Assembly: GCA_900088475.1 (NCBI GenBank)
Contig: FLMG01000167.1
Span: 1 to 50,827, forward strand
Direction: 5' to 3'
Source: Hyphochytrium catenoides
Lineage: Eukaryota; Protista; Hyphochytriomycota
DNA: 50,827 nucleotides
Part shown: positions 677-40,300 of the stretch, piece after piece
Position numbering within the stretch: the first letter of the stretch is position 1
Layout: each line of letters begins with the position of its first letter
Notes under the pieces: model-generated
Databases searched by the model: none
What the model was told of the DNA's origin: nothing
What the model saw: the letters and a program-made list of their open reading frames with translations, nothing else
Program-made: the position numbers and the translations under genes

Positions 677-852
677 CTCCCTCCCTGCCCCCTCCTTCCT
701 GTTTCCTTCCTGTCGCCTTTCGTCTCTCCACCATGTTCTCCGACGGCGGTTCCTGTTCGAAACTCAACCTCTTGGGAGTCCCATCTTAGCTCGTCCTATT
801 TCCTCTACTCTTTGTCCCGTCCCTTCTCTCCTTCTCTGTCTTCACACTACTG

Positions 853-886
<34 letters not shown>

Positions 887-3800
887 AGGTGCATGGTTTC
901 CCTAAGGTTATGGGGATTCTGACTCATCTGGACAAGCTTCGGAACAACAAAGCGCTAAGAAAGACCAAGAAAAGTCTCAAGCACCGCTTTTGGACGGAGA
1001 TATACCAGGGAGCGAAGCTCTTCTACTTTTCTGGGCTGCATAATAACAAGGTACGTCTGTCAATGAGGAAGGGGAGAAGGTGCCAGGAAAGAGAAACCAG
1101 GAAAGAGAGAAGAGAGGAAACCTAAGAAAGACGAGACAGAGAGAACGAGGAGGGAGAGAAGAGAGAGAATAACCGGAGTAACATAGATCTTGACGAAAAT
1201 CCGGAGAAACCTGAGGTCTCTACAAGGTTACGCTTCATGCAAATGAGGCCTGCTCTTCTTGCTTTTCCTCCTCTCACTGCCAGTTCTCTGATTGGGTTTG
1301 ACCTTGAACAACGATCACTCGCACTCCTCCCACTGGAGCGCTGACCTCTGACTCTTCGTCTCTCTCTCGTTCTCTTCTCTCTCTCTGGCTCTCTTGGGGT
1401 TTTTCTCGCGGTCTTTCTCTCTCCGCTCTCTTTGTCTCTCTCTCTCTCTTCGCCTCACTCTCTTTTACTTGTGGCTCCTCCCAGTACCCAAAAGGCGAGG
1501 TGAACAACCTCTGTCTCTTCATGTCCAGGACAAAGTTCCGCCCCTTGACGTGGCGAAACAGTCATCCTTACGTGCTAGCGGACCGGTTGGAGGACCTCAC
1601 CCACCCTGACAAGCTCCAGGCTGACCCCAAGTGTGACCGAAGGGTTACCCTCTACGGATATGTTAGAGGAACGCACCTGAAGCCAGGAATGAAGGTGAAG
1701 ATCACTTTCTCTCCCTCTCTCCTATCTCTCTTGCTCACTTCCCATCGTGGCGCTTCTTATGGACACTTCTCTCCCAGCGTTTTGCCGCAATGCACTTGGA
1801 GTCTTGGATTCCTCCCTTATTCTTAGGAAGATAAAAAGCTTGTCCTCTCTTGTCAGTTGTCGCGTTGCCGTCAAGGAAGAGTTTTAAGAGTCCTCTCTGA
1901 ACCCCAAGTGATTCTGATATCTCTCGTCCTTTCAAACCTGTCTTGGTTTTACCTGTGATGCAGGTTCACATCGCAGGCACTGGGGATTTCTTCATGGAAA
2001 GTGTCACCGCTCTTGCAGATCCTTGTCCACTGCCTGCCAAGTCTGAGGAGAAGAGAAAGAAGCATCTCACTGAGAAGGATACTCTCCTCTATGCACCGAT
2101 GTCCAGGTAGAACTTCCCTTCTCTACCACTCGCTCTTCGTCCTTTTCCGTTCTTCTTCTCTGTCTCCCTCCAATCATCTCTCGTTCTCTGTCTCTCTATA
2201 TATTAAGAAAGAATCTGAGAGTCCTGGTGAACTTCTCCACCTCTTGTAGTGTTGGCACGGTCATGTATGACAAGGATGCAGTGTACATTGACCTCAAGAC
2301 CGTCAATTACTCAAAGACTGCAGAAGATGGAGAGGGAGAAGAAGAAGGAGAAAGAGTGGAGAGGGGTCAGGCTTCCACCGAAGGCGTTGCCATGATTAGG
2401 GACCTCCAGGTCAGTCATTGGGACCTTTCTTTCTCTCTCTTAGTCTCTTTGCTTTCTCTCCTCCTCTGTACCTGTCGTTCTCTCCAAACCCTCCGAGGAC
2501 AGCGACGTCTGGGGGATTTGGACTCTTTCTTTTCTTGAGACCTCTCTCTCTCTCAAAATCTCTCGCAGCTTTCCTCACCTCTCTCTCTCTGTCTCGCTCT
2601 GGCTGTATCTGTCTTCCTCTCTCTCACTTCCAACATTTAACATTCTGTTGTTCCCTTTTTGTCGACAGGAGGTAGCAGTAGGCATCGACGATAGACTGGA
2701 GGACCGCTCTCTCTCTCTCTTCAAATCCTCTCAACCGCTCAGCAACGCTGACGTAAAGGTTGAATCGGACGCCACTTCCGAAGAAGAAGAAGAAGATGAG
2801 GAAGACGAGCATGACGACGACGAGGAACAAGAGAAAGACGAGGCCAAAGGAGCTCGCTATCAAGAGGAAGTAGTAGAGGATCACACTGGAAGAATACGAA
2901 GACGGGCCATTTTCTCTAACGATAACGATGAGGAAAGCGGCGAAGAAGATGAAGACGATGGCGAGGTTGAGGAAGAGAGCGACACGGAAGAGGAAGAAGA
3001 GGAGGGAGACGAAGAGGATAGCGAAGAAGAAGAAAGAGAGGGAGCAGTCAACGAGATAGGTACTGGCGCCACACGATGGAAAGAGCAAATTTTAGACCGT
3101 GCGGCGCAGTCTTTCCTCCAGCGAGAGAAAGAGACAGTTAGTTTCATGGAACTTATCTATGGCAAGCCAGAGAAGCTGCAAGAGAAGGAGGAAGAGAGCG
3201 AGAAAGATGAAGACGATGATGACTTCTTCAAGATTAAAGGAAAGAAGGAGAAGGTAAGGGCTAGATATTCGCTTCTTCCTACTTCGTTTGGCTCGTCTTT
3301 TTTATCTCTACCTCTGTTTGAGGGAGCTACGACATGACAAACCTCTCTTTCTCTCTCTCTGTTTTCTCCCTGCCTCTCTCTCTCTCTCTTTACCCCCATT
3401 ATCATAATAATCCCCATTGACCTGCTACTTACCCCTTTCTCTCATGGTGTCGGGCTGCCTTATGTCTGCCCCTAGGACTCAAATACGCACCAGGAGATGG
3501 ATTGCTCGCGCTACCACTTCGCGGTGGAGGAGCTGGATGACTGGGAGGAGGACGAGGAAATCTATGAACGACTAAAGAATCGCTTTGTGACGGGAAACTG
3601 GCAGAAGGAGAAGGGAGAGGGAGGTGAAGAAGGAGAGGAGGAGGAAGTCGATGGTGACTTTGAGGACTTGGAAACCGGTGAAGTGCACAAGGCGAAGCAG
3701 GTAGGGTTGGCAGACATGTTCTTCTCTCTCTCTCTCTCTTTCTGTGTGTCTCTGTCTCTGTGTATAAATATATGCTATTCACTCTACAGTTATCTGTTAT

Positions 3801-6800
3801 GCCGACCTCACTGTATCTAGCTATATCCTGCTTTCCTCCTTCACAGTTGATATCACTTATCTTTCTTCGTAAGGTCCTGGCCTTCTTTCTCTCTCTACAA
3901 CTCCTTAGATGCCCCTTACTAAGTCTCCTCTCCTTTATCGCAGAGGCCCCAGGAGACGGATGAAGAGATGCGCCTCAGGCTGGCGGTAGAAAAGGCAGAA
4001 AAGAAGGCAAAGTTCGATGAAGAATATGATGACGAGAAAGAGGGAGCGAAGGAGGAAGAGGAGGGCGAGCACGTTAGTGAGCTGATGAAAGAAGCCAAGC
4101 GGCTGAGAGAGTCCCAGGTAAATGCGGGCAAACTCTCGAAACGCAACTGTGGCTTTGTAGCTGTCTCCTAGTCTCTTTCTCTCTCCTCTATCTCAGAACG
4201 GAGTAGTCTTCTCTTTCTATCACTCTTGCTCTAGCCCTCCCTCGTTCTCCTATAACGTGTCGATTACCTCGAGAAAATGCCTTGCCTTTTGCTACTTTTC
4301 CTTCACTCCGATAGTAGATCTCCTCACGGTTCCTCTTACCTACTTTTTTGCACTTCGGCTTGGCTCTAGAGAGAAAGAAATGCTAAAGAGTTCGGAGATG
4401 AGGGGGAAGACCGAAGACTTCAGTTAGAAGGCTTCCGTCAAGGTAAGAAGGGCCTTGTAGCATAACTTCTACCTTCGAAGGGAAGGAGCGCTCACATTTT
4501 TCGTGGTTGGTTAGGCCTGTATGTTCGCATAGAGATATCCGGCGTCCCGTCAGAGTTTGTTACGTACTTTAATCCTCAGGTGCCCATCCTGATCGGAGGC
4601 CTTCTCCCATCCGAGCACAGCCTGGGGCTCATAAGAATGAGGATCAAGAAGCACAGGTACCTTTGCCTTCTGGGAACACTAGAAGGAACGGGAAGGACGG
4701 AAGAGAGAGAGATGAAAGATGACTCTTCGGGCCGACCAAGGCGTAGAGAGATAGTAGAAGAGAACGACAGAAGAGAGATTGAACGCTAAATAGTCGGACA
4801 TAGGCAAGGAAAGAGGAGTCTTGAGACAGTCTGAAAGTCCAGTTCGAGGTATTCTACCCCTCTATCCCTGTCGTCGTCAAATCGGCGCATTTATCCCGCT
4901 CTGTGTAGGTGGCATCGCAAGGTTCTGAAGACGAACGATCCTCTCATCTTCTCCCTTGGATGGCGGCGCTTCCAGTCTCTTCCGCTGTTTTCCACCGAGG
5001 ACCAGAATGATCGGCATCGCTATCTCAAGTACACGCCAGAGCACATGCACTGCTTTGCAACAATATATGGGCCTATCACACCGCCAAACACTGGTGAGAA
5101 TATTTCTCACTCTGTAGTCTTGAGACTAGTCTCGGTTCTATGTCTCCTCCTTAGTCTCTCTCTCTCTCTCTCTCTCTATGTCTTGTTCCCTCTCCCCGCC
5201 TTTCTCTGTGCCCCAGCCCTGGTTGCCGCCCAACTGCTCAATCTCTCCTCGCCTCTAGGTGTTCTTGCCTTCCAGCGGTTGTCCGGTACCAGCGGCTTTC
5301 GAATTAGTGCCACTGGCGTCCTTCTGGAACTGGATCACTCGTTCACCGTCGTGAAGAAGTTGAAGTTGGTGGGAACGCCATATAAGGTGAGAACAGGAAT
5401 TTGAAGGGAGATTAAGAATTGAGAGAGGGGAGAGAGAGAGAGAGAGAGAGAGAGAGGTGCAGCAAGGGTCAAGCCAAAGGAAAGGTTACAAGCGTATCGT
5501 CGTGACTACTGTCAGACCGAAGATACGCCGGGTATTCTTTGGCTTTCCCTTTCCCTTCACCGTTTACCGTGCAAGCGGACGGTTGACGTTAGGAACCCCT
5601 ATGCCACTTATGTGCCTTTCTTTCCTCTTTGTCTCTCTCGCTCTACCTCTTGTTGTCGTCTCTCGCTCCTCACACATTCACGCTGCGCCGCGCAATGTAT
5701 GTAGGTGTTCAAGAACACCGCCTTTATCCGAGGAATGTTCAACTCTGAACTCGAGGTGGCGAAGTTTGAAGGTGCCTCCCTGCGCACCGTGAGTGGGCTG
5801 AGAGGCCAAGTGAAAAAGGCTGTGAAGGGACACCAAGGAGACTTTAGGGCGACCTTCGAAGACAAGATCCTTCTCTCCGATATCGTTTTCTGCCGTACCT
5901 GGGTGCCAGTCACAGTGAAGAACTATTACAATCCAGTCCTGAGCAGCCTTGTCCAGCGGCCCGAAGAGGTAAGGCCAGCGGAAACATGATTCTTGGGTTA
6001 GACAAGCAGACAACAAAGCAAGCAAATGGAAGAGAGTTAGGCCTGTCTTGATGAGTAAGGCTTTCTGCTGCTCAACTAAGTTTCTTCTTTTCTTCTCTTT
6101 CTCTACTCGTATCTCTCCTCATTTCACCTTTCGAAGTGGCGGGGAATGAAAACCGTTGGCCAACTGCGAACAGAGAAACAGATACCAATCCCTGTGAAGA
6201 AGGACTCAGTGTACAAGCCTATTGAGAGAGAGGCGAGACGGTTTAACCCACTCGCCATCCCTAAGAAGCTGCAGGTGAGCGTCTTCTTGCTTTTCTTATG
6301 CTGCAGGTTAGGAAGAGTCTCTTGCGTGAGAAAAAGACGAATGAAGAGGCATGCAGGGAACAGAGACAGGAATCTTCAACACGTGCTTTCCATCTGGGTT
6401 AAGAACGAAGCGCACTCCTGTCCATCAGGACCGTGTCGCTTCACCTCCAGGACGTTTTTCTAACATTGCTCCCACATCGGTTTTCCTTCCTTCTCCTCAG
6501 GCTGACCTTCCATTCGCGAGCAAGCCAAAGCTGGATAAGAAGAAGTCGAAGTCCTCGTACCTTACCAAGAGAGCCGTGGTCCTGGACCCAGAGGAGAAGA
6601 AGAAGTATGCCTTCATGCAACAGCTGACAACTCTGAGAAATGACAAGCAGGACAAGAGAAAGAGGAAGCAGAGAGAAAAAGCGGAGGACCATGCAAGGAA
6701 GAAAGCCAAGTTAGCCGAGAAGTTTGCTCCTCTACAGAAAGAGGAAAAGAAGAGAAAGTACCGAGAGCAGGGCAAGGAGGAGAAACGTAGGACGGCCAAG

Positions 6801-11126: not shown

Positions 11127-13044
11127 AAGTATTTATGGGACGGAAGAAGAAGGCACAACAACTGCAACAACGAGAGTGAAGAGCCGATAATCTTCAATCA
11201 TCATTTTCCAAAAGTACCATCCTCTTCTTACCAAAGGATGGGCCATAACGTGGCCAACGACATCTTCCAGGTCATCTACAATAAAAGCTTGTTACGTGCC
11301 ATCACAGACTTCCAGCCTGGAAAGACATTCTCATATTGGATTGACGGAGACAAGGCATTGCGGCTAACTCACCGATCGCTTATACATCTGAAGGACTGTG
11401 CCTGCAGCACGAATTTCTTCTTTAGCAGCAGAGCTATAAGAATCGCGGTCGAGCGAGGGAGTCTGGAGCTCTTGCAGACCGTTCTTGACCAAAGTGGGAA
11501 GAGGAGGTTCGTTGTTGAGCCCTACAAGGAAGATACAGAAGAGGTATTGAAGGATCTGCAGCCTATCACGATACGCTGGAAACTGAGAAAGAAAAGCCCA
11601 AGCATCCGCCGCCACCATGGCATACCCGCCAGTTGTGTTTCTCACGGTGATCATAAGGACGAACAGTTGTACGGGAAGAGTTCAACAGATAAAGGAGATG
11701 ACGACTTTTCGTTAAAGGAGTCGACGATGAGTTTAGCCAACCTTGCAGCCACGCTAGGTCACCTACATGTCCTGAATTGGCTCTGTACGAACACAGACTA
11801 CAGCTTTGATAGAGTGGGGTTATTGGGTGCGGTGAAGTATGGTCACGTGCAAATCGTGCAATGGATGTGGTCTCGATTTGACGGATCCCTAACCGATCAC
11901 AGAAAAGCTCTCCGGTGGGCAGCGGCATACGGATGGGTGGCTCTCTACAAATGGCTTCTCTCTCGTTGGAATCATCATGACGAAAAGTTCACTCTAAACT
12001 TGGCCAGCAATGCGACTAAGGAGACTGTGCATCTCACTTTCCTCAAATGGATGGCGACAACTCACCCAAAGGTTATTGAGCACCAGTCAGAAGTTATCTT
12101 CGAGGAGGCTCTGGCAAGTGGGCATTGGGAAGTGGTCAACTGGATCAATGCGCTTCATCCAGTAGGTGATAACCATATGATAAGCTGCTGCACCCTGAAG
12201 CGTGCGGCCCTGAGTGGACATTTAGACGTTTTGGAATATATAAAGCAGCGTTGGCCGAATGTGGGTGACGTCTGTGAGCTTGCTACAAAGGGACAGCTCA
12301 ATGTCCTTCGATGGGCCTTCATCTCATGTGAGAACTCAACAGTGGGTATCGGAGTAGGAGCCATTTGCAAGGCTGTTTCTAGTGGACACTTGGACATCGT
12401 AAAGTGGATTCTCTCAGAACGGCCTTCTGACTGCAGCTTGCTTCCACGCTGGCTTATTGTTCACGCTGTAATAACTGGTAAACTGGAGATCGTGCAGTAA
12501 CTACTATTCAATCTGTCCGGATGCCGAATATGAGACCAAAAAGGCCATGAAGGGAGCTGCTAAACTAGGATTTGCAGACATCGTTGGATATATCTACGAG
12601 AACTATGTGGAGGTGGATGGGAGGGGTGGCAACAACGGTGAGCCGATATGTGACAGCGACAGACAGACCAAATTGTGGTTAGCTAGAGTTCTGAAAACAG
12701 CGTTGTTACATGGACAGCTAGAAGTTGTCAGATACCTTTACAATAAGGGCTGCGGTGAGCTCAAAGTCAAGGACGTACTAGCCGGGGGAAGAGTTAATGT
12801 GGAGCTATTGCAGTATGTATGGGATCGGGCAGCGGATCGTTGCTACCATGAGGGAGATATCAATTATCTCCTTCGATCGGACTTATGGTCCGTGGCCTTT
12901 TGGTTGCTGTCTCAGCCGTCCAAGTCACGCAATACCTGGATTAAACACCGACTGGCAATTGATAGTAGCATAGCTTCCAGAACTTTCAAAATTGAGATTG
13001 GAGCGTCTACGGATCAAAGGAAGAAAGTACTGCTGGTGACGTGA
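11043..13044 (+). pseudogene. Intronless ankyrin-repeat protein gene with a +1 frameshift at 12498-12500 (pseudogene or assembly error)
   Basis: Repeated AAxxGHLxVLxWL-type ankyrin units: AVERGSLELLQ, AATLGHLHVLNWL, AVKYGHVQIVQWM, ALASGHWEVVNWI, AALSGHLDVLEYI, AVSSGHLDIVKWI, AVITGKLEIVQ. The next frame continues with AAKLGFADIVGYI and ALLHGQLEVVRYL. Removing one A from CAG-TAA-C joins the two ORFs (LEIVQYYYSICPD...). The real start may be ATG 11238, because the ORF from 11043 begins in the GTACAA repeat. Confidence 0.8.
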
Positions 13045-14339: not shown

Positions 14340-17300
14340 ATGAGTAGTACAATCGACCTATCGCTGGAGAGATTCTGCGTAAGTCATCAAGCACTTCTGT
14401 GCCCTATACTAGAAAATCGGTCCCCAATGTATAGTCTGCTTCTTTGCACTCTAGCAATGGGCTCTGATACTCAAGCCTGCTATTTATAGGATGAGTACAG
14501 CTCCACCGAGTTTATTGAGGAGCTCACTCGAGGACTCCTTGGCTCCTCCTCGGCCCACGCTCCGATGTCGCCAACGTCGTCCTCTAGTAACCTCCAAACC
14601 TCAAGCTCCACGAAGAGGACGGATGGCAGTCTGCCTCTGGAGGAGCTAAAGAGGCTCTTTGAGGATACTTTGGGTCAATTAGGCGGGCTTCGCGATGAGG
14701 TTCGCTAATCTCTGGCTCCAGTTGCCTTCTCCTATTCTAAACCCCACTCTCTACATAGGTAACGACCAACATTGATTCCCTATCCCAGCAAACAAAAGCA
14801 GCGGATAGAAAGTACCAGCAAGCGCTTCAGCAGCACGATGCCTCTCTTAAGGTAGGAGAAGGGGTAAAGGGACCTAAATGACACTATCTATAGACCTGTC
14901 ATGGGACACTTGCGTTGAGAATGGGTGGAGGAGACGGGTTAGGCGAGGAATTTGGCAAAATAAAGTGTCATTATTTCTTATCGTCTCCATCTCCAGGCCG
15001 TGCTTTCAGAAATCGATCAGCTGGAAGACCGCTTCGGCAGAGTTGGGGCCATTGCGCTTCGAATAGGTAATGATCCACCTTACCGATTGTTCTTTAGCTT
15101 GTCAATACACGTCGTTGGCTGCGTATATTGGGTTTCAAGGCTCGAATACCTTAGAGACATCCATCTACTTTTCTGTCCTCTCCACAACCCTGACCACTAA
15201 GATCTTGCGTCAATTCGTTTTCCCTTGTCGCTCCTCTTATTGTGGCATCTAAACGTTCAATCGTCTTCCTAGGGGATCGTCTTGCAACCATTGACTCTCA
15301 GCGACAACGAGCCATGGACGCGTCTCTTCTCATGCAGCACTTCCAGGACTTCCGGGCTGCCTCAGTAACTGAGACTCCGGAGGACAGCCTCCCATCATTG
15401 TTCAAGGACTCTCGCAGACAATATGAGGTAAGATGGGGAGCACGTTGACACTAGGCAGAGACCATGGACGGCCCGGTGATTTAGCTATAACTAGAGAAGT
15501 CGTTTTAGCCTCACCTTGACTAGGCTTAGCTCTTGTAGATGTCTTGATATTCTCACTTTTATAACCCTCTTCCTCCTGTCTCGATATCACACTCTCTAGG
15601 CGGCAAAGGTCCTCAGCCAGTTGCAGGATGTGGTTGAAGGCATCGGAGTTCCTTCTGTTGGAAAGGTCCTTATAACCTACCTGTCATCCCTAAACGAAAT
15701 ATCTTTGTTCATGACCTTTTCCCTCTTGCATTCCAGCCTCCTCCCAAAAATGATTCTCCTCAGGGTTGTTTCTACATTCGCACCATCCTCGTCTCGTTGC
15801 CCACTGTGTGTTCAACGAGGAAGTCTCCGTCTCCCTCATTACTAACCTCTTACTCACACTGGCAACTAGCGCCGGTGTCTCTCTCTCCTTCCTCCGTCAT
15901 GGAATCTCGACCAACCTCAAATGACTCTCTCTATGTACCTCAGTCGGCAAAGCACATCCAGGCCCTGAGCCAGAAGATTGAAAACAGGCTTCTAGACGAA
16001 TTTTCCCAAGCGCAAGCATTGCCTAATCCCGACATCTTTGCAATGAGAACGTCGGCGGAAGTTTTGCTTGAGAATGCCGCAAAAGACAAGCTATTTAACC
16101 GATATGTGTGGAACATAATGCAGGACAAAGTTGCAAGGTAGACAGGGAAGGTGGGAAAGATAGGGCGGCACAGACAGGTCACAGGTCGATGTTACAACGT
16201 TCATTGCTGAATAGGCAAACGCGGTAGTCGCCTCTCTTTTCTTCTCCTTTCCTGACCCATTCAGCCATCTGACCCCCCGGTAATCTCACTGCTTATCCCT
16301 GGACTGTAAAACCACCTGCTACGCCCACTTGGGACGCATTTCTTGCTAGACCTGCGCAGGTTGTAGAGAAAGGATCGGAGCTGGAATCTCTATTCAACCG
16401 CATTCGAGAGGTCTGCGCAACCGAAGTGGAGATTATCGCAGCAGTCTTCCAGGGTTCCGCCGCGACCTCTCTACTGGAGCTACTGCTCGAACGAATATTC
16501 AGCGACCCAGTTTCTGGTACTGTCTGCTGCATTGCATTACGGTCAAAATGAGTCTTGCGGTGCTGATATCTTATCATCTATACTTCAGTCTTTGCTTATA
16601 AAAGCACTATCTTCCTCTCCGCCTGGGATATCTCTCCTATATGCAGGCATTCAAGCTCAACTGGAGCAGCTCTTGTCCGAACGTGGCGGTGGGCGGACCT
16701 CCTACAAGGAGACTGATGTCCCTCCCACCGAGTATTTACAGCTTCTCTCCTCTGCCTATGAAGAGACCTTCACCCTTGTAGAAGATTTGAATAGCCTCTT
16801 CAAAGAGAAGAACTCTCATGAGGAAGGAGCGTTGACTGGAGGAGAGGGAGGGGGAGCTCTGCCAAGACTTTTTTTGGACCCATCCTTCCTCCCACTCCAG
16901 CTGACAAACCTTTTCGCTTCGTACAAGCGTTTCTACGTCAAGTGGGAGGAGGCCCTACTGCGGGAACGCTGTACGACCCTTTTAAAGCCAGTAGCCGCAC
17001 TCAATAAGAAAGGAGGCAAGCAGAGGACTACACAGCAAGGTAAAAGTGTCAAATCTTAAAGCGGTTATTAAAGCCGCCAAGGACCCTATAGGTCTTTGCA
17101 CTTTCTTGGGGACCCACTGCTTGCTCCGTCTATGGTGTTGTGCGTTGAGATTCGCGACTTCATCTTTTTGTACATGTATCTCATCATCTTGGCCTTAGCG
17201 GAGCTGCCAGCCAGAGGCAAGGGTTAACGTACTCTACTGCGGCTGTTACGATGCTATGATGCTTTACCTAACCTCTCTTGTCTTGGTGGATGCAGTTCTT

Positions 17301-20174
17301 CTGCTCCATGTACACTGACGTGTCATGCCTGTTCTTGTCCTTCATATATTGGGGCGATGCCGACTCTTTCACTAGCATATGTTGCCGATGCCAGCTCTCT
17401 CTCAGCATCCAAAATTCGAATACTGACAACTGTTATCGGAAGCAGGACCTTCTTCTTCATCCACAGAAGTGAAGAAGCTATCTTTTCCAGAGCTCCTTAG
17501 GCTTTGCGAGGGCGGTTCAATAGCGACGAAACTCATTCAATTCTCAAAGGTCAGTTACGCGGGAAGCCATTGAGCGCAGCCTTATTTTCTTGCTTTATGC
17601 GTCCAAGTGCTACACCACGTGTAGAGAGCATCGATGGGATGGTCACTAGCTGCTAACTTTCTTATCAATGGATACGTAGGAAGCCACAGAGCGCTCTCTC
17701 CAGATGTCAATGGGCTCAGATAAAGGGCCCGAATATGCTTCATACCTCTTCTCAAGCCTCTGTTCCTTCTTTGGTGCACAGTTTTTTCAGGTGCAACCAT
17801 AGCCTGCCCGACTCGGCTGTATACGCCCGGCTCTTGTAACCTCGTCTCCTCTTCAGGGCAGTTCATTGCCCGGCTAAACTCTTGTCCCTGAGTCTTCATC
17901 CGCCTTTAGGTTACCTGCCTTTCCGCCATATCAGCTCTGTTTGCGAATCATTCACATTGTATTTTCAGCCACGGGCTGTCCTTATATTCAAGATCTCAGC
18001 ACCTTCTATGGAACTTCTTGTCGTTCGTTTGACCAGAGGCTTCGATGTTGGCATTAACGGAGTCATTTTCTCTGGAACTGTTTTGCAGTTTATATTTGAG
18101 TCGACCAACGACCTGCTCCAGGATGCTTCGGACTCAGGTGCTGCGCCTCCGCCCTGGGAGTTTTACCGGATTATTGAGGTTCGTTGTCTTATAAGGGCGG
18201 TGACGTCTCCACCCTGCCACTGGTGTCCCTACTCTTGCTCATTACTACTGTTGAAGCGATAGGTCTTCTTAAGCTTTCCTATTCCGTGGTTTCCTGTGGG
18301 TCTTTGTCCTCCACTCAAGGCTACTCTCTCCGTCGTGATCTTCTCCATACGTGCACCACTGTCTCATGCGAATGGCCCTTCCTAGATTGGCAAGGATGGA
18401 GTTGCTCTGCTCCAGGAGCATTTCAACACGGTTGTCCGTCCAGCTGTGATGTCCAAGCCCACAGTCTTAACATATCCTAGATACCACTCTCTAAGTTCCT
18501 CTCCATGTATCACAACCTTCTTCTCTTATTAACTGCGCACGTCCCTTCGCTTCCTACCTCCGCACACTATCTAGCGTTTTCCGCTGCAGGTCCAGGTTAC
18601 CATCCTCTGTCCTTTGGGACACAAGTTTGTCCTGTTTCCTTAACTGCCTTCCACTGTGTGCTCAGAATACAAGCGGTCTGTCATAGCTGCACTTGAAAGC
18701 AAAATCATAGATGGTGTTGAGCGTAGTGTGGAACTACTCATCAACCATGTCAAGTACACTCTGAGGTATGACCGGGACACACTACAATATGGAAAGGGAG
18801 GTAGAATGAAAGACATCAGATACTAGGGGCAGGCAGGCAATTTCCACTTCCGGAAACTTCCGTATGCTCCTTTTTTGCCGAGGGCTGTCCCTCACACGTA
18901 TGCAAAAGCTCGACCCAGGGCAAGAATGACTTTCTGCCAAAGGAGGAGTATCAGAGTTTCCAAGCCACAGCGGCGTGTCAGGCAGTCTGCAAGATACTTA
19001 AATCGCAGACAGAGCACATAGCGAAGTGCCTGGTAAGTTGCACTTTCCTTCTGCTATTACCTTCTAGCCCTTTTCCTCTTTAGATGCGATACTTGGGGCT
19101 TGTTTGTCCCCCTTTCCTAGTGTACCATTCTTCCCTTTGTCTTTACGTGAAAGGACTGTGCAGCGCAAAGTGATTACCCTCAGGTTAAGACTCTCTCTTG
19201 CCTTTATCTGCGCACTTCGTATAGGGTGAAAATAACCCTGGGTCCATTTGGAGCATGATAGGGATGCGCTTTCAGCAGGTGCTTATGGAGCACATTCTAA
19301 AGTATCACATCAACATGCAAGGATCGTTCACTCTAATGAGGTGAGCCGGCTGCATTGGCTGCAGTCACCTCGAGATGCAGCCTTGAGGAGTAGTAAAGAA
19401 GCTGAGAACTTAACAGCCATCGCTCTCTACTGCTGTCTCTATTCCCAGGGATATCGATGAATACCGAGCAGTGATGCGGGGTATGGGTTGTGAGGAGGTG
19501 AATGAATCTTTCGATGGCTTGAGAGAGATTGTCAGTATCTACATGGTCAAGCCCGAGAACCTCTACTCCGTTCTGAAGGTGCGCGTCTATCTCTTGACCC
19601 TATTTCGCCCATATCCAGTCTACCTGCCACTCCTAACGCCCAAATGAATATTACTTTGTTGCTCATGAGGCTCTTCCTCTTTTGACTGGGGTATGCTGTT
19701 TCCCTTCTGCTCCCAAGCTTAAGCCTTCCGCCTGCTCGTCATCTCATTCATTTGGGGACAACCTTTGTGTGCAGGAAGGAGCCCTGGCCACAATGGAGCA
19801 CGAAGTGGTTTACGCTTTCGTGAAACGGAGAGCGGACTATAAGCACCATATATCCTCTTCAGCCTTGAGATGTGTCCTAGCCAAACCTTCCTCTAACAGA
19901 GCAACCTACTTTCTCTCCCGGTTACTGTTGGTTCTACCTTCGCTGGCTCCGAGGCCTACATCTCCCTCCTACAACTTTTATAGTTTACGTTCCCTTTAGC
20001 TGTGCCTGTTTCTGGCTTCTTATATCATTGCATGAGAGTATAATTGCCCATGTCCAGCATAGCAGCCCTTAACTCGTATCCTACGGTGTCAAGGCAGCCT
20101 GGGCGAAAACTTTGTTCTCAACTCTTCTTTTGCAGCCTTTGAACATACCGCAGGCAGACGAAGATCAAGAGTAG
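14340..20174 (+). CDS. SEC10: Exocyst complex component Sec10/EXOC5, ~19-20 exons, including two AT-AC introns
   Basis: Spliced product: MSSTIDLSLERFC|DEYSSTEFIEEL..., LEDRFGRVGAIALRIG|DRLATIDSQRQRA, IENRLLDEF, EVEIIAAVF...LLLERIF, YLQLLSSAYEET, QGKNDFLPKE...ATAACQAVC, GMRFQQVLMEHILKYHINMQGSFTLMR|DIDEYR, FDGLREIVSIYMVKPENL, YAFVKRRADYK. These match the Sec10 family pattern. Stop TAG at 20172-20174, assuming the last AT-AC intron is spliced. Confidence 0.88.
18472..18654 (+). other. U12-type (minor spliceosome) AT-AC intron, 183 nt, phase 2
   Basis: 5' end AC|ATATCCTAG; branch site TTCCTTAAC at 18636-18644; 3' end ...CTTCCAC|T at 18654. Splicing restores the frame: VMSKPTVL-T-VCSEYKRSVIAALE. 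Confidence 0.9.
19850..20084 (+). other. U12-type (minor spliceosome) AT-AC intron, 235 nt, phase 0
   Basis: 5' end CAT|ATATCCTCT; branch site CCCTTAAC at 20066-20073; 3' end ...CCTAC|GGT at 20084. Splicing gives RRADYKHH-GVKAAWAKTLFSTLLLQPLNIPQADEDQE*. Confidence 0.8.
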
Positions 20175-21022
20175 CGCGTCTTTCTGCTGGGAAACGACTG
20201 AAAGAACCTACTATGGACGCAGCTCACACTCGCAAGATCCAGAGTACCTGGAGTCCTTATGACTCGACTCATCCATCTTCTCTCTTTAGGGCTGACTCCT
20301 TAGGGCTGAACCTTCTGACCATGGCTTCTGCTACCACTCTCAGGAGCACCCCGTCATGCTCCTGAGTTCCTACTCATTATTAGTCCTTTACTACTAAGCA
20401 ATTTTGGCCCCTTCGCTCGACAATCTCTTTATATTCCTGCGTTGCCTGCGTCGACGCTGCTCGCCGTTGTCAGACACGGATCTTGCCAAGCCGCAACTAG
20501 CTTGTGCTTGGGTCTTTGCATTCTTTCCCAGCTCTCCTTCTGCTGGAAATACGGGGCAGGAAACAGTCCTCTAAAGACCCTACTCGATAGGTTTTTCTGG
20601 ATGGTGGTGGTAGGGATACCCGCTACATTACAAAGGTAGAAAACGTCAGAGGCACAGACGAAGCTGACTTGTCGCCACATTGGCCGAATAGCTCAGTGCC
20701 GATCCTTGCTTGAGAGCATGCGCCGCTGGCCTGAGCTCTGCCATGTGCATGATGATGCCAATAGATAGAGATTGCACTTCATTTCTTCCTAGTTATAATC
20801 AGAAGGCTGTCAAAGATTTTATTGGGAGGAAGATCCACAACCAAAACATTCAGAATCCTTTCACGTAAAACATTCCTTGAAAGAATCATAGACCATAGTT
20901 ATAATGAGTTGAGACCGAAAAGGTGACCAAATTGAAAGGATCACTTGCAATATTTCATTGCCTCTTGAGTTTTGTCTTTTATGGTGGCGGGAAAAGGGGT
21001 GGATCTCTTACTTGGACCTCCC

Positions 21023-21286
21023 AGAGAGAGAGGGAGANNNNNNNNNNNNNNNNNNNNNNNNNNNNNNNNNNNNNNNNNNNNNNNNNNNNNNNNNNNNNNN
21101 NNNNNNNNNNNNNNNNNNNNNNNNNNNNNNNNNNNNNNNNNNNNNNNNNNNNNNNNNNNNNNNNNNNNNNNNNNNNNNNNNNAGAGAGATGGGGAGAGAG
21201 AGAGAGAGAGAGAGAGAAGAAAGAAGGAGAGTGTGCTCAAGAGAGAAAGAGAGAGAGAGTGTGTGAGATAGACGGAAAGAGAGGAA

Positions 21287-21321
<35 letters not shown>

Positions 21322-21465
21322 AGAGCGGACAGAGGCTGACCACTCTACAGGTAATGGAAAGCAGACACTGGATTGCTTCCCTGATGTGGAATCAGATCCC
21401 AGGCCTGGGACAAGAGAGAGAGAGAGAGAGAGAGAGTGAGAGAGAGAAGAGAAGAGAGAAGAGAG
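21023..21465. repeat. (GA)n microsatellite cluster upstream of the dynein gene
   Basis: Multiple GA runs at 21023-21037, 21183-21320 and 21413-21465, around the N-gap at 21038-21182. Confidence 0.95.
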
Positions 21466-21565
21466 ACAGGCGAACTATAAAGGTGGTGAAGGATCAACAG
21501 AGACAGCAAAGCTGGCCTGACAGGTATATTTCTGAGCGTGGCCCGCATCAGTAAGCTCCTAACAC

Positions 21566-22273
21566 AGCTGCGGTGGGCAAGGTAAACACGCTGAGCCTGC
21601 GCCGTTGTGTGCTCTTGCAAGAGAAAGAGTATCGCAGAACAGAGAAGAGAGATCTGCCCGGGAGAGAAGAGGGAATTGGAGGCACAGGTAGACACTTCGC
21701 CGCCCTTCAGGAAGTGAAGATGAAGGCTCAGTGNNNNNNNNNNNNNNNNNNNNNNNNNNNNNNNNNNNNNNNNNNNNNNNNNNNNNNNNNNNNNNNNNNN
21801 NNNNNNNNNNNNNNNNNNNNNNNNNNNNNNNNNNNNNNNNNNNNNNNNNNNNNNNNNNNNNNNNNNNNNNNNNNNNNNNNNNNNNNNNNNNNNNNNNNNN
21901 NNNNNNNNNNNNNNNNNNNNNNNNNNNNNNNNNNNNNNNNNNNNNNNNNNNNNNNNNNNNNNNNNNNNNNNNNNNNNNNNNNNNNNNNNNNNNNNNNNNN
22001 NNNNNNNNNNNNNNNNNNNNNNNNNNNNNNNNNNNNNNNNNNNNNNNNNNNNNNNNNNNNNNNNNNNNNNNNNNNNNNNNNNNNNNNNNNNNNNNNNNNN
22101 NNAGCTGCCGTGGGCAAGGTAAACGCGCTGAGCCTGCGCCGTTGTGTGCTCTTGCAAGAGAAAGAGTATCGCAGAACAGAGAAGAGAAGAGAAATCTGCG
22201 CGGGAGAGGAGAGGAGATTCCAGGCACAGGTAGACACTTCACCGCCCCAGGAAGTGAAGATGAAGGCTCAGTG
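21566..22273. repeat. Two ~170-bp diverged direct copies flanking an N-gap
   Basis: 21566-21733 and 22103-22273 both read AGCTGC.GTGGGCAAGGTAAAC.CGCTGAGCCTGCGCCG...GAAGATGAAGGCTCAGTG. They differ by about ten substitutions and two small indels. Confidence 0.85.
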
Positions 22274-22330
22274 AAGCTTCCACTCTGAGAAAGATTTGCG
22301 ATAGCGAGACTCTCCTCGGGTGGACAGGGG

Positions 22331-25300
22331 ATGGAAGAAGCAACAGTGACGAAGCCCAGCGGCTTCAACACAGATGTGTAAGTCTCTCTCTCTCTCTCTC
22401 CTCTCTCNNNNNNNNNNNNNNNNNNNNNNNNNNNNNNNNNNNNNNNNNNNNNNNNNNNNNNNNNNNNNNNNNNNNNNNNNNNNNNNNNTCTCTCTCTCTC
22501 TCTCCCTCTCTGCCTCTCCCTCTCTTCTCTCCGCTGGCGCTTTCCTGTCTATCCAGTGCCTGTGGACCCTCGCCGGCACCATCTTTTCACTCTTCTGCCT
22601 CTAAAACCTTCCCGCATTTCCATCTCTCTCTCCCGGAAGATGCTTTTCCTCACTAAGATGCACCTGCCTCGTTTGCCCTAGCCATTCTCTGTCTAACAAT
22701 CTGCATTCCAGTCTCTCTTCTTTCGTCATCAGGGTCGTTGCACCCATGATATCTCCTGAGAGAGAGAAGGAAAGTGAAGACTTTTTATCTTCTCTCTCTC
22801 GGGAGCTGGAGCTGCCATCATCCAGAAGCATACTGGACCAATTTGCAGCTGATGGCCAGTCACGTGTCCTCTACGTACAAGTTATTTATGAAAGAGAGGA
22901 TGGCAGCTTTGACTCCAAGGAAGCACAAACAGGTCCCCACCTACCTTTCCTCCGCTCTCTCTCTTTCTTCCTCTCTCTCTCTCTCTCTCCCTCTTCGTTC
23001 CCTTTCTCTCTCACTCTCTCTTTCCCTCTTTCCTATCTTCTTTCCTAATGTCATTATGGACCTTGCCTCTCACATTGCTTCTTCTCCTGCATAGAAAAAC
23101 CCTTTCTCCCTTCTTTGTCTTGCTCTCTCTCTCTCTCTGTCGGCTTTTTCTCTTTCTCATCAAGCCTTCTCGTTCTCTTCTTTCAGCTTCGCGGCCCCGC
23201 GTGTTCGTGTCAAATCAGATCCGCTACACGGCAGCAGACGAGGTGGCGAGCGGCATAGCTTTTATTAAGCGCTTTCCTAACCCTCTCGAGCCACAGCGGC
23301 CCTTGCTCAGCCAGCTTCAGCTTATAACCCTAGGAGGAGGTATGCAAGGCCACCGCAGGCAGGCCCACTGTTTCATTAGTCCCTCTCTGACTCTTTTTTC
23401 TACACGTTCTCTTCCTTTCTCTCAGCGCTATTCTGCCACCAAACTTCACTCTCTCTTCTGCCTGCCTCTCACTTGCATGGTTTGGACAGTAAGTCACCGG
23501 TCCCATTGCTTTTTCTCATTTCAGACATACTGTCTTTCGGCTGCTCCTCCTGTCCCTCTCAATGTCCATTCTGACTCTCTCTCTCTCTCTCTTTGCCCGT
23601 TTTCGCCGGCTCTACGTTAGCCGGGAAGGATAACTTCTCCTCTTCTGGAGACGGCCTTGGAGGTGACTCTGATGCACTTGAGATGGTCTACACCTATCTT
23701 CACCACGCTTTCGCTCCTTTGATGAGGCAGTACGCCGAGATTCGAAAGCCTAAAGTACGAAGGACAACGTCCTCTTTCTTCTATCTTATCGCATCTACAT
23801 ATTTCTACCTACTAACTCCTACATCTTCTTCCTCAAGCTGCGTCATGGTGATTGTCTTCCCAACGGAAGCTGCTATCCTCCTGCTTTGCTCTAACGGTGG
23901 AGCTTCATTTCACCTGCTGGTTATGTTGCCGTCTCTTTCCGTCTGCTGCCCTTCGAGACCATAAGCTCTGTCTTGTTCTGCTCGCTCTTCTATCTTCTTA
24001 CTCTTTCTCTCTTCTCTTGACTCTCGGCTCTTGCACAGTCTATGTCCACCCAAGAAGGTGGTGACGCTCAAAATGAGAAAAGCGGCATTCCTGCTGTGTC
24101 TAAGAAGATGAGAGAATTGGAGCTTGCGCTGCTTCAATGTCATCAGAACATGGACATTCCAGAGGTAAACGATGGGGGAACCATGTATCCAGCGCTGCTA
24201 GATGGGGAAGTATGAGGAACGCGCAGAAAGAAGGACCACACTGGGTAAAGAGATATTGGACAGGCGTTCGAGGGCAAGGAAATCAGTAGACTGAGATAGA
24301 AGAGAGATAGACAAGGCGCCAAGGAGGTAGAAGACAGGAGAGAGCCAACGTTTTTATGAAGGTCCACGTTCCTCTGACGACCTCTCGTGCAGGTGAACCT
24401 GGTCTTTCATCCGGCGGTCCAGGAGGCTGCCAAGAGAGTGAGAGCAGGCGAGAAGACTGACATTGAAGGGCTAGGCTTAGCAGAGAAACTGGGAGACGAC
24501 CTTTTCCTTAACGCCCTTCAGGTTCTCTCTTCTCACCTGTCCTCAACTCTGATCCTTAGACCGTCAAGCGCTTTGACAGCTCCTTTGCTTACGACCGATC
24601 TCTCTCCTATCTCCCCTTCTCTCTGATCGCTAAAGTTGTTTTCCGTGGCTTGTCGAGTGCGTTCGACCTCTTGCGTTCCGCTCTCCAACAACTTCTTTTG
24701 CTTTCTGAAGGGTGATCGGCCCTCTCTCTCACGTTGAATGCTCTATTTGTGCTTCTATGTATAGAGCGGGGTGAACCGCTGGATCAACGAGATTCGGAAG
24801 GTGACCCGACTGAGCTCTGAGCCTTCAGCAGGCAGTGCCTTGACAGAGATAAATTTCTGGAACAGTCTGCAGAAGAGACTCCAGCAGACCCAAGAGGTAA
24901 AAGGGTCGTCGGTTCCGGCGCATTCTTGCTTTCTGGGAAGGAGTCTGATCCATCTCTTGCATGGTCTTGCTGAGCCCAAACCTTTTAAACATAAGGCGTG
25001 AACAAATTACAGAAAGATCAGACCAGTTAGGAAGACTCCGTCTGTCTTTGTTGGTTCTTCGAGCATGCATAGTCTTCTTCGCTTCTCTTGTCTGCCCTAC
25101 TCTGGCATTTCAGGATAGAGCTCATTAAGGGCTCTATCCGTATGTCTGCCGCTGACTTTTCTGCCCTTCACCATCATCACTCATTTTCTTCCTCTGCCTA
25201 ATCTGTATCATGCGTTCTCTCTGGTCCCTCTACAGATGCTGTCGACACCTGAAATTGAGTTGACCTTGAACCTGTTGAAGCAAGGGAAGCGATTTCTTGT

Positions 25301-37300: not shown

Positions 37301-40300
37301 CATAGATCCCAAGGCTATAAGTAAGGAGCAGCTCTATGGCACCCTCGATCCCACGACTCTCGAATGGGAAGATGGTGTCTTCACCTTTATCCTCAGGCAG
37401 ATCTTAAACAATGTCCGAGGGGAGAAAGGGAANNNNNNNNNNNNNNNNNNNNNNNNNNNNNNNNNNGCAACAGTGAGTCGTTGTGGAATGGTCTGGTTTA
37501 GTGAGGATACTCTTTCGACTGCGATGCTCTGTGAGAATGCTCTCAGAAGTATGAGGAAGGCAGCAGGAAAGGCAAAGGAAGCTGGGGCTGGCATTGATCC
37601 TCACGAAGGCGCAAGAGCCCAGTATGTGCAAGCGGTTGAGCCGTTCTTCTTCCCCGGCAGGACTGCAGATTCGTTGTCTGAGACTCTGTCGGCGGGCAAC
37701 CTCTCCGGAACTTTGGTAGAGACCGCTCTCCGCTTTGCTGTGGAACAGGAACATGTAATGGAGGCAACGAGAGGAAGGCTTCTAGTTACTTTCTTTTCTC
37801 TTCTAGGGAAAGGAGTGGGGAAGGTGATAGAGTACAATGAGAGTCATCCTGATTTTCCAATGGGCGAGGAACAAGTCCAGAGTTTTGCCTCCAAGTGGCT
37901 GCTCTTTTCTCTTTTATGGGGCTTCGGGGGCTCTATGGCCTTAGGAAAACGTGTTGAATTGGCGGGACTTATTGAAGAGAGCTGCAGTGTTCCCCTTCCG
38001 TCTGCGCTCTCCTTCTCCAGCAGCAACAAAAAGAGCGCTTTCAAGGACGGGAAAGAGAACCTGGAAGGACGAGAGTCTCTTTTGGACTATGAGGTTTGCG
38101 TAGAGACAGGAGAATGGCGTCACTGGAAGCAGAGCGTCCCGCAAATAGAGTTAGAGAGCCACTCCGCTCTCTCAACCGACATCGTCGTGTCGACGGTGGA
38201 TACTGTGAGACATGTAGAGGTTCTGCGAGCTTGGCTCTCAGAGCATCGCCCTCTCATCCTGTGTGGGCCGCCAGGAAGCGGGAAAACGATGACGCTTAGC
38301 TCAACTCTTCTTTCGCTTCCTGACCTAGAGCTCGCCTCGCTTAACTTTTCCTCTACAACAACCCCTGAGCTTATTCTGAAGACCTTCAGTCAGTACTGCG
38401 AGTATAAAAGAACGCCGTCTGGACTGATTCTGCAGCCAACGCAGCCAGGTGAGGTAGTCTGAGATGCTCTTATCCATGGACCTGCTTGTTCTGGCTACTT
38501 CTTCCCTCCGCTTTTCCACCGATAATGGCTACTCCTGTCTCCACTTCTCTGTTTGTCTGTCCCTATCCGTCGTCTGCATGTCTCTTTCGAACGATATCGT
38601 CATCCTGCATAGCTCTTGTACCTCCTTCGCCTCGAAGTGTAGTGGCATCTGCCCGGTTGTTAGCCTATTCTCAATCTTTTCATGCATGTGGTGAAGGCAA
38701 ATGGCTGGTGGTTTTCTGTGACGAGGTCAACCTGCCTGCAAATGACCAGTACGGCACACAACGAGTCATCAGTTTCATGAGGCAGATGACTGAGCAAGGA
38801 GGTAGCGCTAAGTCGTCTTCTCTAGCATACTGATCCCTCTTCCATTCTCCGCTTAACGGTCTTTGCAATGGTAGTCCGTCCCTTCCTTCTCATCTCCAAG
38901 CCACACTGGCTGAAATTCAAAATAGATCTCCAATTCCAGAGCTTGGGCCAGTCATCGTTCATCGCCTAAGACTCTTTATCACAGGCTTCTGGAAAGGCAA
39001 GGACTACGTTCGGCTCCAGCGTATCCAGTTTGTTGGCGCCTGCAATCCTCCTACAGACCCAGGAAGAGTGATTCTCTCCAATCGATTCCTCCGACACTCT
39101 CCACTGCTACTAGTCGACTATCCTTCTCCCTCCTCGCTAAAGCAGATCTATGGAACATTCATCAAAGGTCTCCTGAAGCTTGCTCCATCGCTAAGAGCTA
39201 ATGTTGACCCGCTCACAAACGCTATGGTAAGACGACCTATCATGACAAATGTCCGCCAAATCTCGTCAGCGTGCCGTGACTTGTGGTTCTTATATGTCTG
39301 CAGTGATAGCATCCCCAACACTTCTCACCTTTCCTTTGTTACCTTGGCGCCGCCTCAGTCGTGGCGCCGTTCAATAATGAGCATTCATGTTGACAGTTCT
39401 CCGTGTCTGCTTGCGCAGGTCGACATCTATCTCTACAATCAGCGTGAGTTTACGCCCGACATGCATCCCCACTACATCTACAGTCCCAGAGAATTATCAC
39501 GGTGGATCCGCGCTCTGTATGAAGCGATCGAGCCGCTGGAGACTCTGACTTTGGATGAGCTGACTCGGCTCCTGGTGCATGAAGCTCTAAGATTGTTTGT
39601 TGACCGTCTTGTCACCAGAGAAGAGCAAGAGAAGTGCAGTCGCGCGATCGAGGACATCGTATGCAACGCTTTCCCTATGATAAACAGGTACAAGATTGTC
39701 TCAGTCTCTCCTCGGGTTGGGGTCAACACTTCCTGCTAGGTGTAATGCCTAGCGTCTACAGCTCCTTGTGATAGTTCGGATGCCCTAAACTGCCTTGCGT
39801 TAACTCCGTTCATTTCCCATGGCAGGAACACCACTCTGGCATCTCCAATCCTCTTCTCAACATGGTTATCGAAGAATTACGTCAGCGTCCAATCCAAAGC
39901 TCTACGAGAGCATGTCCAAGCTCGTTTGAAAGTGTTCAATGAGGAGGAATTGAATGTCCAGTTAGTAGTATTTGACTCCGTTCTGGAGCATGTGCTTAGA
40001 ATAGACAGAGTGCTTAGACAGCCGCTCGGACATTTGCTCCTTGTTGGAGAGAGCGGCGCCGGCAAGACTGTTCTCTCCAAGTTTGTGGCATGGATGAATG
40101 GTCTTAGTGTCTTCCAGGTAGGAGAGAAAAGAAGCTGAGAGAGAGGGAGAAAGAATCCTAGTGGAAGAGGACGGATGAAGGGAACAGGTCTATACTCCGT
40201 TCTTAATGCTGTCGATCTGATTGGCTACTCGCTATAGCCCTCTGCTCTGATTTGGCCCATCTCCTAGACAGCTGTGTAAGGTTTGACACACATTTTTTAC

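Follow-up and report, generated by a model that had tools for sequence, protein, structure and literature searches.

How is an exon of the exocyst gene Sec10 that ends in the residues KPTVL joined to the exon that follows it? Read through, its frame runs into a stop (TAA at 18530-32), and the original prediction was that the gap to the next exon is an intron with AT-AC ends, of the U12 type that is removed by the minor spliceosome. We have followed this proposal up across the whole stretch of DNA analysed (50,827 nucleotides, hereafter the window) and consider that this stramenopile protist most probably has a true U12-type AT-AC intron in its exocyst gene Sec10, at positions 18472-18654, with a probability of about 0.85. 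We reach this verdict on evidence from sequence and homology: the splice motifs and how they are spaced, the reading frame, and a spliced product that aligns with Sec10 without a gap at the junction.

The host gene can be assigned to Sec10 (EXOC5) on the strength of Pfam gathering scores that are exceeded and of a PDB match to Sec10 (5H11). One exon taken singly matches Sec10_N with 30.3 bits (cut-off 27.4), and single exons match Sec10_HB with 31.8, 30.1 and 26.4 bits (cut-off 26). Along the plus strand, the Sec10_HB matches succeed each other in the order of the profile, covering positions 26-69, 115-162, 174-266, 447-481, 482-524, 530-562, 559-606 and 605-630; the exons for positions 267-421 are not mapped. 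In the last third of the gene we have modelled the introns 18179-18385, 18472-18654, 18766-18908, 19033-19224, 19341-19448, 19579-19774 and 19850-20084. The five that do not have AT-AC ends start with GT followed by A, G or T, and four of these five close with YAG. For the intron 18766-18908 the weak AAG acceptor (...GCAAAAG|C) was chosen rather than the nearby CCCAG|G, because it is the only choice that keeps the frame; it also reproduces the exon spacing of zebrafish Sec10. The coordinates are collected in Table 1.

Table 1. Positions in the window of the predicted intron, its parts and flanking exons, the host gene and the neighbouring genes.
Feature	Position	Strand	Remarks
Sec10 (exocyst subunit) gene	14490-20174 (approximate extent)	+	Pieces of its exons align in order with Pfam Sec10_N and Sec10_HB
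Upstream exon	18386-18471	+	86 nt; IGKDG...MSKPTVL, then AC of a split Thr codon
Predicted U12-type AT-AC intron in Sec10	18472-18654	+	183 nt, phase 2, 69% pyrimidine
5' splice site ATATCCTAG (U12-type)	18472-18480	+	RTATCCT matched 7/7; +8 = A, consensus T
Branch-point sequence TTCCTTAAC (U12-type)	18636-18644	+	Branch A = 18642 or 18643
Terminal AC, 3' splice site	18653-18654	+	
Downstream exon	18655-18765	+	111 nt; its T completes the split Thr codon, VCSEYKRSV...HVKYTL follows
Predicted spliced junction	18471^18655	+	...GTCTTAAC^TGTGTGCTC...
Candidate second AT-AC intron, last intron of Sec10	19850-20084	+	ATATCCTC ... CCCTTAAC, 10 nt ending in AC; 235 nt, phase 0
BMS1/TSR1-type ribosome-biogenesis gene	~800-6800	+	Pfam RIBIOP_C, 98.6 bits at 5705-5986
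Dynein heavy chain gene, long, multi-exon	~25000-50827	+	Right half of the window; Pfam DHC_N2 160 bits, AAA_6 247 bits

The other contents of the window were surveyed as well. The dynein heavy chain gene contains an N-gap near 37435-37470. The intergenic stretch 20900-23600 holds several N-gaps and long microsatellites of the (GA)n/(CT)n type, which translate as RERE or SLSL runs, and G+C falls to 0.39 in 20001-22000. Two long open frames of 166 and 189 residues lie on the plus strand at 12000-13041 and have what, by eye, look like ankyrin-like repeats (SGHLDVLEYI, GHLDIVKWIL); a Pfam search of 12475-13041 at E 0.001 gave no match.

The exon that raises the question starts directly after the acceptor ...CCTTCCTAG|, whose last base is 18385, and ends, as the original prediction had it, at AC|ATATCCT, between 18471 and 18472. 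The class of a minor intron is defined by its 5' splice site and branch sequence, not by its terminal dinucleotides (PMC3584512), and both elements can be read here. The U12-type 5' splice site has the consensus RTATCCTT (PMC2846911), against which ATATCCTA at 18472-18479 matches throughout the seven-base core, the A at +8 being its sole mismatch. Towards the other end, the perfect TTCCTTAAC that had been described is indeed present, 10 nt before the 3' end of an intron of 183 nt; it is an exact match to TCCTTRAY, and the 10 nt that follow it, TGCCTTCCAC, end in the AC at 18653-54. The distance from either possible branch adenosine (18642 or 18643) to the last intron base amounts to 11-12 nt, and the optimum known for U12-type introns is 11-13 nt, with no distinct polypyrimidine tract (PMC3584512). 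A CAG lies 11 nt past the terminal AC, at 18663-65. From 18655 the downstream exon reads (T)VCSEYKRSVIAALESK..., so that the join AC|T is in frame and gives T-V-C-S-E-Y-K, as claimed. What is found at 18472-18654 is consequently the set of features of a U12-type AT-AC intron: the 5' splice site, the branch sequence, the short distance from branch to 3' splice site with no distinct polypyrimidine tract, and an in-frame AT-AC join.

Taken singly, these motifs are about as frequent as base composition predicts, with 11 occurrences of RTATCCT and seven of TCCTTRAY on the two strands of the window. Their combination is rare. Defined strictly as ATATCCT, then 40-500 nt, TTCCTTAAC, 6-12 nt and AC, it occurs once in the window, and 2 of 300 shuffled versions with dinucleotides preserved contained it (mean 0.007), an expectation that the pyrimidine-rich sense strand of this genome's introns would raise locally by several-fold, which is too little to matter. 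The lone occurrence sits exactly on the ends of two exons and joins their frames. A looser version of the pattern has three matches in the window, two of them on the minus strand, and both of these were set aside as chance: the pair 2082->~1860 is antisense to the BMS1/TSR1-like gene, and the pair 37510->37092 is antisense to the dynein heavy chain gene.

The junction itself was assessed by homology, on the basis of one Pfam profile and one distant sequence, that of zebrafish Sec10. Spliced at the AT-AC ends, the two exons yield a peptide of 66 residues that matches Pfam Sec10_HB with 26.0 bits (E 4.3e-6), its residues 6-65 lying collinearly on profile positions 422-481. The link had been said to be of about the length expected for Sec10, and 60 residues on 60 positions bear this out. 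By itself the downstream exon scores 10.9 bits (positions 447-481), and joining the upstream exon to it adds about 15 bits. Among solved structures the same peptide has one significant match, 5H11_A (24.1 bits, E 3.1e-4), from the crystal structure of zebrafish Sec10 (PMC5241887). A gap at the junction, which the original prediction had named as a point against itself, was looked for in this alignment and there is none: the residues of the join, L-T-V-C, lie on the fish LTEC. The lone gap, of one residue, is located two residues upstream of the junction, inside the exon. Further on, the exon that follows the intron 18766-18908 matches chain residues 358-393 of 5H11, and the spacing between the downstream exon and this next one equals that of zebrafish Sec10 (5 residues, chain residues 352 to 358).

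The reading that comes closest to competing is an ordinary U2-type GT-AG intron of 171 nt, with its donor at 18495 (TAA|GTTCCT) and its acceptor in the CAG at 18663-65. The U12-like motifs would then be coincidental, and CTTAAC would be a normal branch site some 22 nt upstream of the acceptor. Such a pair emerged when all in-frame, stop-free pairs with GT-AG, GC-AG, AT-AC or mixed ends were enumerated. The claim that the exon has no convincing in-frame GT donor is therefore fair and yet not absolute, since in-frame, stop-free GT-AG pairs exist, of which 18495/18665 is the best; another, 18446/18673, was discarded without a Pfam match. The acceptor at 18665 has a pyrimidine-rich run and is the first AG past the branch motif, and a GTT donor is apparently in use at 18179 in the same gene, so splice-site grounds alone leave 18495/18665 standing. 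Homology is less kind to it. The peptide that it yields scores 17.1 bits on Sec10_HB, against 26.0 for the AT-AC junction, with 64 residues for 60 positions (a 4-residue insertion), and 14.6 bits on 5H11 (E 0.32), against 24.1, with a 4-residue gap; in other words, four extra residues are required exactly at the junction. In each of two tests, which partly depend on each other, the predicted AT-AC junction thus comes out about 9 bits ahead. In addition, a U2-type intron leaves unexplained the arrangement of ATATCCT, TTCCTTAAC and AC, for which 0.007 occurrences are expected per window. We regard this alternative as very improbable.

Slightly less probable still is the possibility that both junctions are used, the AT-AC junction mainly, accompanied by a GT-AG form, a form ending at the AG at 18665 or a retained-intron form, produced by error or by regulated, slow minor splicing. 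The choice of the 3' splice site in U12-type introns is known to be error-prone (PMC3584512), and the CAG lies close behind the terminal AC. This acceptor had been named as one whose use would tell against the AT-AC intron, but the pair that it forms with the ATATCC donor (AT-AG, 18472/18665) was rejected because the resulting frameshift leads to a stop. Both the form that ends at 18665 and the retained-intron form would be unproductive because each carries a premature stop.

The DNA at the locus is variable. Compared with the window over 14400-20200, Logan DNA contigs (X1-X3) differ about once per 60-100 bases, with sets of differences that are not the same in different runs, which suggests heterozygosity or strain differences. 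Almost all variants listed at 18.1-18.9 kb are intronic. Two fall inside 18472-18654, namely a T inserted after 18495 and C>T at 18516, several more are found in the introns on either side, and there are none in the two flanking exons. The inserted T, present in contigs of two runs, lengthens the intron to 184 nt and has no effect on the exon frame. The distribution of the variants fits a non-coding 18472-18654, an observation to which we attach little weight. That Sec10 is broken here, as a pseudogene or by an assembly fault, and that nothing is spliced, is the least probable of the alternatives: Sec10_HB positions 267-421 have no mapped exons and a library of 1.8 billion proteins holds none resembling the largest Sec10 exon, but the exons with Pfam matches follow one another collinearly on the strand, one open frame runs through the last third of the gene as modelled, independent DNA contigs of three runs bear the window out over this region, and the exons on both sides of 18472-18654 are free of listed variants.

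Several searches looked for relatives of this Sec10. The largest exon (16649-17038, plus strand, 130 residues), compared by HMMER with 1.8 billion representative proteins, retrieved only a spurious repeat protein, and this library seems to lack both the Sec10 of the organism itself and any close orthologue. A search for homologous proteins with the 66-residue junction peptide gave no word-sharing candidate, a metagenome scan with a conserved exon found no relative, and the ESM Atlas returned generic CATCHR-type families only. None of the metagenome and metatranscriptome contigs contains the exact sequence of the spliced junction 18471^18655. A search for sequencing runs that cover the locus listed three DNA runs and no RNA run, and the DNA contigs show no joint there.

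For the U12-type AT-AC intron, we infer that the RNA would be cut at the ends of 18472-18654 by the minor spliceosome, because the intron has the class-defining features of minor splicing (PMC3584512). In this model, U11 snRNA would pair with the 5' splice site ATATCCT and would later be replaced by U6atac, while U12 snRNA would pair with TTCCTTAAC and bulge the branch adenosine, either 18642 or 18643. The AC located 11-12 nt past this adenosine would serve as the 3' splice site, chosen by its distance and without use of a polypyrimidine tract. Excision would then join the AC at 18470-71 to the T at 18655, by which the Thr codon and the Sec10 frame would be restored. An Rfam search of the window yielded no snRNA gene, and hence no minor snRNA among its hits.

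The last intron of the gene, 19850-20084, is a plausible candidate for a second AT-AC intron. Read through, the frame stays open up to a stop at 19997-99, and the C-terminal tail counts 49 residues, compared with 29 if the intron is spliced. Pfam gives 12.5 bits to the spliced product and 11.2 bits to the read-through product, and both matches stop close to position 630 of the 637 in the profile; neither these scores nor the PDB search tell the two apart. If this candidate holds, Sec10 would carry two AT-AC minor introns 1.2 kb apart; the further idea that the lineage has a set of minor introns far larger than the handful of Phytophthora, and dominated by AT-AC ends as in Blastocystis, goes together with it as a tentative proposal that we consider doubtful.

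Among the stramenopiles, Phytophthora has minor snRNAs together with a small number of U12-type introns, most of which are AT-AC (PMC2396436, PMC2846911), Saprolegnia has dozens of minor introns and Blastocystis hundreds, 77% of them AT-AC, and none were found in ochrophytes (PMC10639083). The intron in Sec10 shares the RTATCCT 5' splice site with those of oomycetes, e.g., the peptidyl-prolyl isomerase intron of Phytophthora sojae and P. ramorum (PMC2846911), and, as in oomycete U12-type AT-AC introns, where it reads TCCTTAAC, its branch site is near the 3' AC. Its host is a stramenopile related to the oomycetes, yet the host gene is a different one, Sec10. Blastocystis is likewise a stramenopile, and its minor introns are mostly AT-AC; they are, however, very short and prefer phase 0, whereas the one in Sec10 has 183 nt and is in phase 2. 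The U12-type consensus of human and other animals has T at +8, in contrast to the A found here. Our literature search turned up no minor intron described in Sec10/EXOC5. The position of the intron is probably not shared with animals, because no EXOC gene appears in the supplementary files of one human catalogue of minor-intron genes.

In summary, the U12-type AT-AC reading of 18472-18654 is supported by motifs that are correctly spaced, by the frame and by the preference of homology for the AT-AC junction. By analogy with the oomycetes, in which minor splicing is already documented, an intron of this kind would be ordinary for the lineage and is to be expected there. In annotation, gene finders that allow only GT-AG introns would break or mis-splice Sec10, with the result that four wrong residues are added or the protein is cut short. 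To the minor introns of a stramenopile lineage next to the oomycetes the intron would add another, in a gene from which none had been known. It leaves the knowledge of minor splicing as it stands, and it would support an active minor spliceosome in this lineage.
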